A DNA stretch of 64,000 nt from Epithemia pelagica (taxonomy: Eukaryota > Protista > Bacillariophyta): contig OX337239.1 in assembly GCA_946965045.2 (NCBI GenBank), positions 1,922,001-1,986,000 on the forward strand, given 5' to 3'. Position numbers and translations under genes: made by a program. Of this stretch, positions 6,500 through 20,167 are shown in pieces. Within the stretch, counting starts at the first letter, position 1, and every line of letters begins with the position of its first letter. Under the pieces are notes generated by a model. It was given only the letters and a program-made list of their open reading frames with translations, was not told where the DNA came from and did not search any database.

Positions 6500-7434
6500 A
6501 TGGTGGGCCATGAATCGAAACCAGCTTTCTTGCCGCTGATTGCGAACAGCGAAGGACCCTTGTATGCCACTAGTAGCATCGTTTCTAGTGGTCGACGAGA
6601 GCAACAGGACAATCACCATGCTGCTTCTTTTCACCCTGGCGTTCATGCGCCAAAGGAGCATCGTTTCTCGCCGTACGAGTTCAATGGAGGCACAGTGGTG
6701 GCAGTAGCCGGAGAAGATTATGTGGTTATGGCTGGTGATACACGATTGTCCGCTGGATTCGATATTTTGTCACGGGATACCACCAAACTCCACACGCTCA
6801 CACCCAAATGCATTTTGGCCAGTGCTGGATGCAAAACTGATGTGGAACAATTACGTTCCGTTCTCGATATTTACTTGAAGGTACATACTCGTTCGAGTGC
6901 ATGTTGGCATGTGGTTGTTCATCACAAAGAATAATGTTGAACGATTTCCTCGCAGCATCGCCGATCAAATCTCATGTCTTTTTTTGTGTTTGCTTGATTG
7001 TTGACATTTCGTAGATGTATGAACACAATCACCATAAGACAATGGGCACTGTATCTGTGGCTCGATTTCTTTCTACGACGTTGTATCGAAAGCGATTCTT
7101 TCCCTACTATGCGTTTAATGTGTTTGGTGGTTTGGATGCCGAAGGCAAGGGCGCAGTGTATGGGTACGATGCCATTGGAAGTTATGAACGTACACAAGTT
7201 ACAGCAAGTGGATCTGGACAGGCCTACATCATCCCATTTTTGGACAATCTTATTGCAAATCGCAACCGATTGCAAGAGAAGCCAGTCTTACCTGCAGCCG
7301 AAGTGGTGGAGCTCATCAAGGATGCGTTTGTGAGTTGTGGAGAACGCGATATCTACACAGGTGACAAGGTGGAAATATCAGTCATTACTGCCAGTGGAAT
7401 CGACACAACTTATTTCAATCTCAAAGCAGATTAA
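6500..7434 (+). CDS. PSMB1: 20S proteasome subunit beta type-1 (beta6) (exons 6500-6880, 7015-7434)
   Basis: FSPYEFNGGT, AGDTRLS, KRFFPYY, YDAIGSY, ERDIYTGD motifs; intron 6881-7014. Confidence 0.95.
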
Positions 7435-7853
7435 ATGTGGGGCGTCGCGACAGATGAACGATGGATATCTTGCAATACGGAAGGCCATCGTTCTTTTAAC
7501 CAATAGCTGACTGCTGGTACAAATCCTTATTTACGCTCCATATCGTACGAGCCCTACCTACCTACGGATAGGCAGTCACCCCCAACAGGTTGTAATTCGC
7601 TGTCCTCATGATTTTGGAACTACGTTTAATTCTTAGGACTTGCATACCCAAACCAACCACGTCTCAGTTTCGTGGGCATTGGTTTATGGTGCCCGTTGTC
7701 GATGCAACACTTGATCAACAGTGAGTTGTATACTGTTATCGTATATTAGCCACAGACGCTTACCCTGAGAATGACAAACAGAAAGAGTTGCAATGTTTCT
7801 TGGACCCGGTTCAACGATTTTCTTGTGGTTAGGGGCACTCAGGAACCAAGAGC

Positions 7854-15300: not shown

Positions 15301-16494
15301 ATGGCGTTTACCGGTAAGTACTGCATATACAACAAACTGCTTGAATGTGATTGGTGTAGCTGCGAAATGCTCGAAGCTCACGTGCGAATTTCCTTCATTC
15401 GGTTCTTTGTTTGTGGTGGCGGGATTTGATCCATGATCGATCGACGGATGCGTTCGTCATTCCTTGTAGGAAAACTAATGGGAATGGGAAATCCCCTGCT
15501 GGATATCTCTGCCAATGTGGAACAAGACACGTTGGACAAGTACGACGTGAAGCTTGACTCTGCTATTCTGGCCGAAGACAAGCACCAACCGTTGTACCAA
15601 GAACTCGTCAACAACTTTGCCGTTCAGTACATTGCTGGAGGGGCAACTCAAAATTCCATGCGTATTGCTCAGTGGATGCTTCAGAAATATGGAAAATCCG
15701 ACATGGTTGCCTTTATGGGAGCTGTTGGAGTGGACGACTACGCCAAGCAGTTGGAAGATTGTGCCTCCAAGGATGGTGTGTTGGTCCATTACATGAAGGA
15801 CGAGACCACGCCGACGGGAACTTGCGCCGCCCTCATCAAGGGTGGGGAACGTGCCTTGGTGGCCAACTTGGCAGCCGCCAACAACTTCAAACCCAGCCAT
15901 TTGGAAACTGTCAAAGCTCAGGAAATTATTGATTCCATCGACATTTACTACTCGGCAGGTTTCTTCTTGACCGTGTCGGTCGACGCCCTTGTGACCGTGG
16001 CATCCAAAATGGCTGCCGAAAACAAAATTTTTGCCCTCAACTTGTCAGCGCCCTTCATTGTTGACTTCTTTGGTGACCAATTGGCTACGGCTATCGAATA
16101 TGCCGACTATGTCTTTGGAAACGAATCGGAAGCAGCCACCTATGGCAAGAAACACGGTTTGGGCGAAGACGACCTTGGTAAGATTGCCCTGCACATTTGT
16201 GGACTGCCCAAAAAGAATGACAAGCGACCCCGTATTGTCGTATTCACACAGGGAAGCAAGTCCACCATTGTCGCTACCGAAGGCAAGGTCACGGAATATG
16301 CCGTTGACCCTATTCCGGCCGACAAGTTGGTGGACACCAATGGTGCAGGAGATGCCTTTGTGGGAGGATTTTTGGCCCAACTTTTGTTGGCAAAGGATAT
16401 GGAAGCCTGTGTCAAGGCTGGACACTGGGCAGCTGGCTTTATTATTCAACAATCGGGTACGACCATTCCAGGACCATGTGACTATGACGCTTAG
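15301..16494 (+). CDS. ADK: Adenosine kinase (exons 15301-15313, 15470-16494)
   Basis: GMGNPLLDISA, AGGATQNS, PTGTCA, DTNGAGDAFVGGF (PfkB signature). ATG GCG TTT ACC G|gtaag...tag|GA AAA gives MAFTGKLMGMGNP. Confidence 0.95.
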
Positions 16495-16743
16495 GTAGGT
16501 ACTCCTAGAATCCATAGATCAACACGCAAATCATTAAACATCCTCCTTGCACTCGTAATACATTGTCATTGCTGTTAGCTATCATGAAGTATTGTCTATA
16601 TTACAAGGGCCCACAAGATCATGAACAACAATGGATGATAGGCTGTACATCAGTATGCTCCAGACTATTCTGGATCAACATAAGAGGAAACGAAACACGA
16701 AACTAGCTATTTGTGTAGCGACCGACTGGCTATACTTCTGCCC

Positions 16744-16842
16744 TACCCCCAAGCGCCGGGCGAGTATTGAGTCGCACTTAAAAAGGGCTTTCGTATACTC
16801 ACCCCCACGGCGCGTCCTGGAGCTCTCGATCTTGATACAAAA
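16744..16842 (+). repeat. Left terminal inverted repeat (about 99 bp)
   Basis: Shares with the right TIR a 20/22 terminal block, an exact 21-mer CTCACCCCCACGGCGCGTCCT and an exact 19-mer TCTCGATCTTGATACAAAA. Confidence 0.9.
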
Positions 16843-16904
16843 TCCCAAAACACACATATTACCTCCACACATTCATCACGGTGGTAGAGGTAAGGTGTCT
16901 GTTA

Positions 16905-17472
16905 ATGACCTTCTCAATGTCAACATCCTCCCTCCGAAAGCACCGTCTCTCTCAGAAGCAAGCCCGAGAGGCTTTCGCGGCGCAAGGTGAATCCGAAGCG
17001 TCCCGAGCGTCAACGCAAGATGGCAGAAACAACAGCATCCCCAAAACTCGGAACTTATCTTCACAAGAGCCGAATCCTCCCACCCCTTCTCCATCCAATC
17101 CGTTTCCTTTTCCTTCATCGGTCCAAGTCACCACCTCGTCTCTTCCTATCTACGCAACCCCTTTGGCGAGGAATAGGGAACTCCAACCCTTTGTTGCATG
17201 AATGCAAACAGTGTCATGGAGCACAGAGAATTCCACATCCCATGTACCAATACCAGCCTAAACCCGGTGAATTTGGAACCAAGACATGGTCCTGCGAGGG
17301 TCCCTGCAACTTTTTGACACACTGGCGTATTCGTCACGACCAACTCTCTAGTATACCAGTCGGAGATGTTCCTTGGCCCGCTGCGGCTTGGAAAGCGCTG
17401 GCACAAAATCGTGTTCTGGAGGCTCGTCCAGAGCTTGATGTTGTCCAGAAGTCCACCTGTTGCATTCTTTGA
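16905..17472 (+). pseudogene. Frame-disrupted gene fragment inside the TIR element encoding a Cys/His module
   Basis: Short S/P-rich ORF (ATG 16905 to 17201) overlaps a second frame encoding HECKQC...TWSCEGPCNFLTHWRI (to 17472). Confidence 0.5.
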
Positions 17473-17825
17473 ATGTAAGATATAGTCATCGGTTTGAGTC
17501 AAGCGTCAGTAATATTCTAGATGATTGGTTGCCTCTACATAGATCTACCTCAAGATGTTGAATGAATGTTGTTTCGAGAAAGCATCAACAAATGCATAGG
17601 GGTGATACAAAGCCCACACGACACATACACAACTAAACAGATACTTGGACTCAATCAGGACAGACACATACAACAATGTAGGGCTTCCGGAAAAGGTATT
17701 TCATTAATGTAGCACATGTAAGAGATACAAGACACTCTATCTAAAACTTGATCTGCTTCAGTTGATGGTCAAAAAGAGCAAGGATTCAAAAGTTCCTGCA
17801 AATCCTTTCAAAGTACTCCAACTAA

Positions 17826-18760
17826 CTACCAACTGTTGGCAGCTTCACGCACCATTCTGAGGTATGCGACTTCGTGATCAAGAAGAGGACGGGTCTGATT
17901 TATCAAATCCAGTTCCCTCTTTACTGTGCTGAGACATTGACGAGCAACTGCTTGGACCAATGCAAGGAAGCTAATCAAAACGGATGTTATCCTCGCTTGT
18001 CCAGAATAAAGAGTTGCTACATCATCAAGTCGCTTCATCTGGCTTTTGAGAACCTCAACCTCAAAGTTCACCAACTCGGAAGGGGACCACTGGCCTTTTC
18101 CTGGACGAGGATTTGCTTCGAGTCGTACTGAAGACATGAGGATGCGTTCTTGTCCATCAAAGATATCAGCTGGTGCCAGTTTACAGAAAACGGTGAATTT
18201 CTGGCCTGCATACTCCATTGCATCAAGATGCAGGTTTCCCAGCAAATGAAGGTTACCCAACGCTAGCTCCTCACAGCTCCAAGTGATTGCTTTCGATTCC
18301 AAGTCCGAAGGAGTGAAGGACACCAACAAATCTATGTCGCTTAGATGGTTACTTTCATGGATCAACAATATTGATTGGCACTTCTGATACTCCACAGAGG
18401 ACGTAGGATGGGAGGGGTGTGCCGCTTGATCACTACTTCTCCACAAGCATTCACTTGCCATGGCCTTGCTGTTTTGCCATGCCAGTCCGTAAAGGAAAGC
18501 AATATGGCCTGCTCGAGTAGGGGTCACGCATGAGGTTTATTGATAGGAAAAGGGGAAGCGGGTCGGATGGGGTGGATAGAGGTGTCTTGGGAGTTTGTTT
18601 CATGGGCATCACTGGCCTCGTTGCTGTGGTGACGGAGGGCTGATAGAAGGTTGGCTGTGGACACAGAGTGGTTCGTTGCAAGCACCAGGGACACCGTAGA
18701 TAGCTCTTCGATGGTGTTAGTTTCCTGGGAAAAGCGTTGGACTGGGGTGGAAGGGTCCAT
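17826..18760 (-). pseudogene. Frame-disrupted ORF pair of unknown function inside the TIR element, reading inward from the right TIR
   Basis: ORF 18760-18524 (ATG) followed in another frame by a 233-codon ORF 18527-17826; no transposase motif recognised. Confidence 0.35.
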
Positions 18761-18820
18761 GGTTGGTGCACTTGGTCACACAAGGTTGGGTCCGTGGTGA
18801 GACCATGGAGGTGAAAATGG

Positions 18821-18938
18821 TTTTGTATCAAGATCGAGAAATCGCCAAATTTGGAGGACGCGCCGTGGGGGTGAGAAGACGAATGCACCTTTTCTCCGAC
18901 TCAGGCGGGATTCATAACTCACCCGGAGCTTGGGGGTA
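18821..18938 (-). repeat. Right terminal inverted repeat (about 118 bp)
   Basis: Reverse complement aligns to 16744-16842 in three blocks separated by indels. Confidence 0.9.
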
Positions 18939-20167
18939 ACTTCTGCCCAAACAGCACATAGCGCTTCTTCCCTCAACAGAGTTGTGGGTCGAAATCATAA
19001 AGAAGAATGGCCAACGGCCTATTGTTGATTTGGATCGGGTAAGTTCAGAGTCAATGCGAACATTCACTTCTACTCATATGCAGTTTTTTGTTTCGATTTG
19101 TTTGAGACGACCGCTGCTCAAGAGTAAGAAGACAATCCCATATCCTGTTGACAAAAGTAACATGAGCAGTTTCTATGTTGACGGTTCGCACACACCTGAA
19201 TGATACATTTTCACATACACTGGATTTGTGTACGTCAAAGTTTGATTACAGGTCAATGGCATCGTTTAACTTGTTACATTCATCAAGCATGAAAGCTTGA
19301 TTGCGGAGAGACAACAGTTCCATCTCCTTAGTCCCGTTCCAGACTATTCAGGAAATAAAAAAGGAGTAAGGACTAAGGACAGGAAACTATATACATTGGT
19401 AGAGGTTTTCGCAACCGACAGGCCCTCCTCATTTGCGCGGATAGCCCGCAGACTGATTCCCATGAATGTTCCGAAAGAAAGGGCAACGGGCAACGGCCTA
19501 TCGCCTATCTTTGACTGTGATTGATTCGGTACGTTGAGATTCAATGCGAATTGTCAGTTCTATGCAGCTTTTCTTGTCAAGAACGCGAGGGAAGGCAGTT
19601 GATAGTTGATAGCCCGATCCCATACCCTGTTGCCGGAAGCACAGAGTTTTCTCCGTTGACTGTTCACATTTTAGCTTTTTTTGTGTAGCTTCACAGACGC
19701 TGGATTGGTAGACGTCGAAGCTGGATTATGGTGGCACTTGACATTGGCAAATGACAAATGACATCGCCTATCTTGTTGCACATGCGTCAAACTTGATTAA
19801 GGAGACAACCGGCCCACTTAACTTGTTGCGCAACGCGAACCCCTTTGTCTCTCCGTCATCCTTACTTGTAATTGTAGTAGTGTTTTCGCTGTTTTTCGGA
19901 GCATCGGCCTCCAGACTCCAGATCCAGACGCCCAACAAAAGCCCGGAGTCTGAGTCTTCCCGGTTTGCGACCAGGGGTTGCATTCTTCAAATAAGATATA
20001 CTCGTTACTCGTACCTAAAATAATGCAAAATCATATCGATATTATCACAGATCGAAAACAGCAAAGAGTGTGAATACTAGTTTAGTTTCTTTCCCACCTA
20101 GGGCCGGGAAGCAATTCTACTTCTTAGTTCGCTAAATGCACACGCCGGTTTTTGATCTTGGTGTAGG

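Follow-up and report, generated by a model that had tools for sequence, protein, structure and literature searches.

Pack-TYPE elements have been described in plants for the MULE (Mutator-like element), CACTA, hAT, PIF and Mariner superfamilies (PMC8903248; also PMC6379663). AcademH elements encode a transposase and a helicase and have target site duplications (TSDs) of 9-10 bp, as against the 3-4 bp of AcademX (PMC10045372); their helicases are reported as DEAD/Helicase_C, and whether genes are captured by transposons with a helicase is a question that a fungal survey explicitly leaves unanswered (PMC10799480). In diatoms, an autonomous and active MULE, whose MULE-domain transposase bears a SWIM finger, is known from Phaeodactylum tricornutum (10.1101/2023.01.02.522487). 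Here we describe a 2,195-bp element at positions 16744-18938 of a 64,000-bp stretch of the genome of the diatom Epithemia pelagica (contig OX337239.1; "the window" below means this whole stretch). With a probability of about 0.8, it is a “Pack-type” non-autonomous derivative of a two-gene family, with a DDE transposase and a RecQ-like helicase, whose architecture and 10-bp TSD match published AcademH.

What is new is that an AcademH-like family has given rise to a Pack-type derivative, and this in a host lineage new for such elements; gene capture thereby extends beyond the superfamilies known for it in plants. AcademH is a little-studied lineage, and it is in a diatom that Pack-type capture and an AcademH-like family meet. 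The evidence is unusually complete: besides autonomous partners and a filled/empty allele pair, it includes the exact donor locus, the junctions on both sides of the capture and a second copy that has transposed. The case is a tractable one for asking by what route host DNA enters cut-and-paste elements and whether a RecQ-like helicase borne by a transposon takes part.

The insertion and its family of copies

The element is flanked by a perfect 10-bp duplication, ACTTCTGCCC, and its termini read TACCCCCAAGC... on the left and ...GCTTGGGGGTA on the right (Table 1). Aligned with each other, its two terminal inverted repeats (TIRs) are 80% identical; two indels, of 9 and 10 bp, separate them, and they have in common two exact blocks, one of 21 bp (CTCACCCCCACGGCGCGTCCT) and one of 19 bp (TCTCGATCTTGATACAAAA). 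Open reading frames (ORFs) run inward from both ends and stop on each side of a 353-bp gap (17473-17825), and no transposase ORF is found inside 16744-18938. An earlier note on this DNA had claimed just such an arrangement, namely the perfect TSD, long TIRs with the 21- and 19-bp blocks and two ACCCCCA motifs each, inward ORFs meeting at a gap of ~350 bp and the absence of a transposase, and each of these features is present.

An exact-protein look-up of the product of the neighbouring adenosine-kinase-like gene (whose stop codon lies ~240 bp from the element, the element being on the downstream side) led to two contigs of the ENA assembly ERZ21939226. One, L076, has the filled site and is 100% identical to the window across 13 kb, element included. 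The other, L075, is 99.7% identical to the window upstream and 99.1% downstream of the element site and carries a precise empty site, ...ggctat[ACTTCTGCCC]aaacagc..., with one copy of the 10-mer and no element. The empty site fixes the borders of the element and its 10-bp TSD without any statistical argument, and it is the kind of allele that the earlier note had proposed to look for. No empty site was found in the window's own genome, where the flanks of the element are single-copy; because of this, L075 and L076 are best read as two haplotypes of one organism, in which the insertion would be heterozygous. An assembly artefact was considered and rejected, given the base-for-base agreement of two assemblies and the existence of a second copy (described below). 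The window element is a real, recently inserted mobile element.

The element-free haplotype has a private insertion of its own, of ~3.9 kb (L075:7750-11661, corresponding to ~19387 in the window), which lies ~440 bp further downstream than the empty site and contains a 1,006-aa ORF that gives a weak match to the reverse transcriptase family RVT_1. Both haplotypes therefore bear different private transposable element insertions in this intergenic region.

Searching the genome (60.5 Mb in 23 contigs, the window being C13:1922001-1986000) with the left TIR and with the whole element recovered 17 left/right end pairs, ~15 of them with perfect or near-perfect 10-bp TSDs, all different. With ~17 copies sharing the same ends and ~15 of these lying between different 10-bp TSDs, chance is excluded, and the multi-copy family whose existence the earlier note had left for checking is indeed there. 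The 9-bp and 10-bp indels between left and right TIRs are identical in every copy, so that the asymmetry is a family trait and not decay, just as the note had supposed. In every subfamily, three blocks are kept at the left as well as the right end (TACCCCC.AGCGCCGGG, CTCACCCCCA.GGCGCG and TCTCG...TTGATACAAA), and these are candidate transposase-binding sites.

The autonomous copies

Copies of 7.8 kb with the same ends occur on C6, C11, C16 and C2, and a copy of 6.1 kb occurs on C5. They contain two convergent ORFs: ORF1, of 1,734 aa, reads inward from the left end, and ORF2, of 726 aa, inward from the right end; both are intact at C16:3063261-3071092 and at C2:3182701-3190472. One further copy of the family, on C3, is 26 kb long.

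ORF2 matches the Pfam families DEAD and Helicase_C, and all of its matches among PDB sequences belong to the RecQ family (BLM at 1e-11, then RECQ1, WRN, RECQ5 and E. coli RecQ); by these matches its product is predicted to be a RecQ-like superfamily 2 (SF2) helicase. For ORF1, Pfam offers DUF6589 only (E=2.5e-7), and the ORF1 profile found no match among PDB sequences. A word-based search gave 13 close relatives, and an exhaustive HMMER search gave 441 representatives at E<=1e-3. An earlier AlphaFold run on residues 640-1420 with the 13 close homologues reached a predicted local distance difference test (pLDDT) of 54.8, and this low-confidence model had no Foldseek match; a run on residues 760-1340 with a 64-sequence alignment reached a pLDDT of 91.9 and a predicted template-modelling score (pTM) of 0.92. 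Foldseek returned no match for this confident model either. The modelled core has a DDE/RNase H fold whose best structural matches are the P-element and Hermes transposases. The candidate catalytic residues are D797 (45/46 homologues, on beta1), D1042 (61/62, directly following beta4) and E1298 (54/54, in the helix that comes behind a large all-alpha insertion), and a conserved G-D-L-H..H motif follows beta5. Since the modelled fold has these three residues at the positions expected of a DDE triad, the product of ORF1 is, on the model, a DDE transposase that would be catalytically active. Like the transposases of the P-element and of hAT (Hermes), it combines an RNase H-like DDE fold with a large helical domain inserted into that fold; it differs from them in that no sequence similarity to ORF1 was detected, in its TSD (10 bp here, 8 bp there), in having no THAP or BED domain and in the extra helicase gene.

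The earlier note had taken the element for a Pack-MULE, a non-autonomous member of the Mutator superfamily that would depend on a MuDR/MULE-type transposase for its movement. The 10-bp TSD, TIRs of ~100 bp (99 and 118 bp), host gene fragments and lack of a transposase all agree with this, and so does the precedent of Phaeodactylum, a diatom whose active, genuine MULE has TIRs of ~200 bp and a TSD of 9 bp (10.1101/2023.01.02.522487). An autonomous partner such as the note had anticipated does exist, yet the MULE domain that it was to carry does not: every long copy with the same TIRs encodes the DUF6589 protein and the RecQ-like helicase, and no Pfam match to MULE, Transposase_mut, DBD_Tnp_Mut or SWIM appears in these copies at E<=1. 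The spacing of the candidate residues (D-244-D-255-E, with the large all-alpha insertion) and the termini, which begin with TA and which the note itself had called atypical for MULEs, also speak against it. The Mutator assignment is thus largely refuted, and we consider it very improbable. With the Phaeodactylum tricornutum MULE, the family shares its diatom host, its type (a TIR transposon), the length of its TIRs, a 9-10-bp TSD and recent mobility; it differs in having neither MULE nor SWIM domain and in its added RecQ-like helicase.

Host cargo and its donor locus

BLAST against the autonomous copies resolved the window copy into three parts: a left arm, a cargo and a right arm (Table 1). 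The left arm holds the 5' region of ORF1 and its first 86 codons (ATG at 16917), the frame stopping at 17199-17201, past the junction. The right arm holds the 5' region of ORF2 and its first ~120 codons, frame-shifted (ATG at 18760); an ORF at 18524-18760 begins MDPSTPVQRF, as does the 726-aa helicase.

Over its whole length the cargo is 95.5% identical to C3:1639519-1640742. This locus (L069) contains two complete convergent ORFs separated by 353 bp, gene A (448 aa) and gene B (456 aa); the ENA gene calls there are 448 aa for gene A and 409 aa for gene B. Gene A has no Pfam family match. The product of gene B is Cys-rich/RING-like and conserved in diatoms, with homologues in Epithemia (58%), Fistulifera (annotated as RING-type), Odontella and the MMETSP transcriptomes, and these homologues mark it as a genuine host gene. 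The full genes are found only at C3, and the direction of transfer was therefore from host to element; the reverse, from the element to C3, was rejected on the completeness of the genes at C3 and the conservation of gene B in other diatoms. Because the cargo is a copy of a convergent host gene pair, its own ORFs converge across a gap of ~350 bp. The convergence that the earlier note had likened to MuDR thus has a different source, namely the family's own convergent genes together with cargo from two convergent host genes. The claim of a gene-capturing non-autonomous family held up, both through this host-derived cargo with its parental locus on C3 and through a second subfamily with other host DNA.

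A second Pack copy lies at C16:546572-564149, with the same two junctions and a TSD of its own (GTCTGCGACC/GTCCGCGACC); the element has therefore moved at least once after the capture. This copy is broken by two later insertions, the first an 8.4-kb copia-type retrotransposon (RVT_2; L066:1641-10023, C16:547940-556322). The second is ~7 kb long.

Capture has recurred in this family: eleven of the 17 paired-end copies, falling into three non-autonomous subfamilies, contain DNA that the autonomous element lacks. The three copies of subfamily N2 measure ~1.85 kb each (e.g., C18:416464-418320), with ~600 bp of interior that is 87-94% identical to C13:949783-950501. In the N2 donor locus (L073, C13:948283-951816), the matching stretch takes in the 3' end of a Mem_trans (PF03547) gene, whose product has 547 aa, and DNA downstream of it; this gene faces a convergent neighbour, a GAPDH gene. 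Judged by these alignments, N2 is the one other subfamily that demonstrably carries host DNA as cargo. Subfamily N3 comprises five copies, each of ~1.79 kb, and a single deletion derivative of 1.1 kb; ~1.4 kb of its interior is absent from the autonomous copies, with matches of 71-85% at C10:2582676-2583436 and C1:1788881-1789221.

Both resolved captures (2/2, the window element and N2) took convergent 3' ends and the spacer between them, a pattern that may be chance or bias.

At the left junction of the window element, the autonomous sequence reads ...GGAATA and the donor ...TTCCTA/GGGAAC (a slash marks the break), with a 2-bp microhomology (TA); at the right, the donor reads ...CTCCA/CAG and the autonomous element ...TAAG/CAG/AGGACG, with a 3-bp microhomology (CAG). 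Of the autonomous element, the window copy has kept both ends, and in place of the middle stand 1,219 bp copied from the C3 host locus. We lean slightly towards an origin of the cargo in the repair of an excision-generated double-strand gap, during which copying from a sister element would have strayed to the C3 locus and then returned. Both junction microhomologies, TA and CAG, are consistent with such a template switch. The derivative would be mobilised in trans by the family transposase, binding the conserved terminal and subterminal blocks; it inserted into the single ACTTCTGCCC near the adenosine-kinase-like gene, duplicating those 10 bp.

The tandem-insertion (Pack-CACTA) model, put forward for Pack-TYPE elements of plants (PMC13317346, PMC8903248), would have the cargo arise from two insertions of family members at C3 with 1.2 kb between them; aberrant events would have deleted their inner ends, and the resulting hybrid would have been mobilised along with the intervening DNA. 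Besides this precedent, it would accommodate a cargo that is one contiguous chromosomal stretch between internal breakpoints in both arms. The C3 locus, however, is intact, with both genes complete, and would need later restoration; no match to the TIRs or arms of the window element lies beside the cargo-homologous C3 stretch; microhomology is present at both junctions; and the junctions of subfamily N2 have short filler segments, typical of repair synthesis. We regard this route as unlikely, though not negligibly so, and give gap repair with template switching the preference. It is a good deal more speculative, and on balance rather improbable, that gene capture is intrinsic and frequent in this helicase-carrying family, with the RecQ-like helicase promoting template switching on repair intermediates after excision.

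After their separation, the two Pack copies accumulated cargo changes of their own, nine in the window copy and eight in the C16 copy (~1.4% between the two). Among the copy-specific changes in cargo coding sequence, one is synonymous and 11 are non-synonymous, which means that there is no purifying selection and that the fragments are drifting though still open; after capture, they evolved without constraint at the protein level. A chimeric 233-aa ORF (17826-18527) joins a TE-derived N-terminus to the C-terminus of gene A, and a 211-aa version of it was called as a gene. That such chimeric ORFs might be a functional new gene is suggested by this call and by the open state of both cargo fragments; the ratio of one synonymous to 11 non-synonymous changes, the transposase and helicase N-terminal fragments being out of frame with the cargo, and the heterozygous state of the insertion make it highly improbable. 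For the annotation of diatom genomes, it matters that gene callers already predict chimeric “genes” inside the window element. More speculatively, the two retained inward-facing 5' gene regions could transcribe the captured convergent gene ends into overlapping RNAs able to silence the parental genes.

Like the plant Pack-TYPE elements, then, the window element is non-autonomous, has TIRs and a TSD without a transposase gene, carries host coding fragments with an identifiable parental locus, has moved after capture and has sister subfamilies with other cargo. It differs from them in its superfamily (DUF6589 DDE plus helicase, AcademH-like) and host lineage (a diatom), in a cargo that is one contiguous block (two convergent gene ends and their spacer) and not a mosaic, and in low copy numbers (2-6 per subfamily).

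Table 1. Features of the element and of its surroundings, in window coordinates.
Feature	Position	Strand	Remarks
Neighbouring host gene, PfkB-family adenosine-kinase-like	15433..16494	+	PF00294 on called gene
Left TSD copy, ACTTCTGCCC	16734..16743	.	10 bp; single copy in empty allele L075 at position 7302
Left TIR	16744..16842	+	99 bp; begins TACCCCCAAGCGCCGGGCGA; two ACCCCCA motifs; 94-100% identity to 16 other left ends in genome
Left arm (element positions 1-432)	16744..17175	+	96% identity to positions 1-432 of C6/C11/C3 copies
Cargo (element positions 433-1651)	17176..18394		1,219 bp; absent from autonomous copies
Cargo part 1, last 98 codons and stop of gene B	17176..17472	+	matches L069:2945-4315:-
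Cargo part 2, 353-bp spacer of convergent host genes	17473..17825	.	collinear with L069 2592-2944
Cargo part 3, last 189 codons and stop of gene A	17826..18394	-	matches L069:1245-2591:+
Right arm (element positions 1652-2195)	18395..18938	-	544 bp; 93% identity to C6 copy positions 7210-7765
Right TIR	18821..18938	-	118 bp; 9-bp and 10-bp insertions relative to left TIR; two ACCCCCA motifs
Right TSD copy, ACTTCTGCCC	18939..18948	.	10 bp

Superfamily placement and further family members

The absence of an XPG nuclease domain separates AcademH from AcademX. AcademH is reported from animals and fungi, and fungi also account for most occurrences of DUF6589. The parent family of the window element has TIRs, a 10-bp TSD and a large transposase with a separate DEAD/Helicase_C gene, and neither XPG_N nor XPG_I found a match in ORF1, ORF2 or seven long homologues. 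Measured in this way, by architecture and TSD length, against the published descriptions, “AcademH-like” is quite probably the right name for the family. The differences from known AcademH are the host, a diatom (a stramenopile), and the nature of the window copy as a cargo-carrying deletion derivative, of which we found no AcademH case in the literature; our literature search found no paper on Academ in diatoms.

The two-gene module is kept in distant homologues of ORF1 at 23-27% identity (L077, L081 and P0159). In L077 (ORF1 identity 23%) and L081 (27%), a convergent DEAD/Helicase_C gene lies directly downstream, and the helicase products are 22-30% identical to ORF2 (E=3e-29 and 4e-34).

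Several points weigh against the reading as a whole. The superfamily name is drawn from architecture and TSD length, not from homology of ORF1 to reference Academ transposases, and the L077 relative has a TSD (ACTTACTC) of 8 bp, short of the 9-10 bp of AcademH. As evidence for template switching, microhomologies of 2-3 bp are weak. The cargo differs from C3 by 43 changes common to both Pack copies (3.5%), so that the capture must have some age or have drawn on another allele.

The first two of these points would also suit a family that forms a separate, unnamed DUF6589-plus-helicase superfamily outside Academ/AcademH, with the element and its cargo just as described. The likeness to AcademH comes from published description; Pfam gives only a DUF for ORF1; and the seven long homologues are without the XPG domain that would tie the family to AcademX. 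The family nonetheless matches the published AcademH definition point for point (PMC10045372), and the DEAD/Helicase_C type is that reported for AcademH helicases (PMC10799480). A separate superfamily therefore seems improbable to us, and we retain the placement of the parent family as AcademH-like.

The L077 element (L077:7636-14998, on the JGI metagenome contig Ga0214477_100477) has TIRs of ~180 bp with perfect 25-bp termini (CACACTGTAG...) and has as its neighbours a chitin synthase gene on one side and a cNMP-binding kinase gene on the other. In P0159 (1,677 aa), DUF6589 (E=1.5e-21), DEAD and Helicase_C occur within one predicted protein, which could reflect a natural fusion of transposase with helicase or else a gene model that has been merged.

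Some members of the family are reduced to derivatives resembling miniature inverted-repeat transposable elements (MITEs), made up of the two outer TIR halves only: one of 106 bp at C17:2679245-2679350 and one of 113 bp at C8:3434637-3434749, with the 10-bp TSDs ACTCGACAGC and GTGGGGCGGT/C, respectively. A third such derivative, at C16:357430-357525, has no clear TSD. The copy at C2:4329994-4331847 has six extra bases (TAACCT) between the TSD and the left TIR (C2:4331847). The right terminus of the autonomous copy on C11 (C11:2574544) abuts another terminus of the TACCCCC type (TACCCCCTAGCGGGGATGAG), and a related element must therefore lie directly next to it.

Divergent relatives with ends 76-84% identical to those of the family are found at C8:2095012-2097211, C9:2044678-2052310, C10:2818871-2820841 and C4:736515-737029, so that several lineages of the family coexist in this genome. 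Consistent with several coexisting lineages, the ORF1 homologues P0002-P0011 in ERZ21939226 show 60-82% identity.

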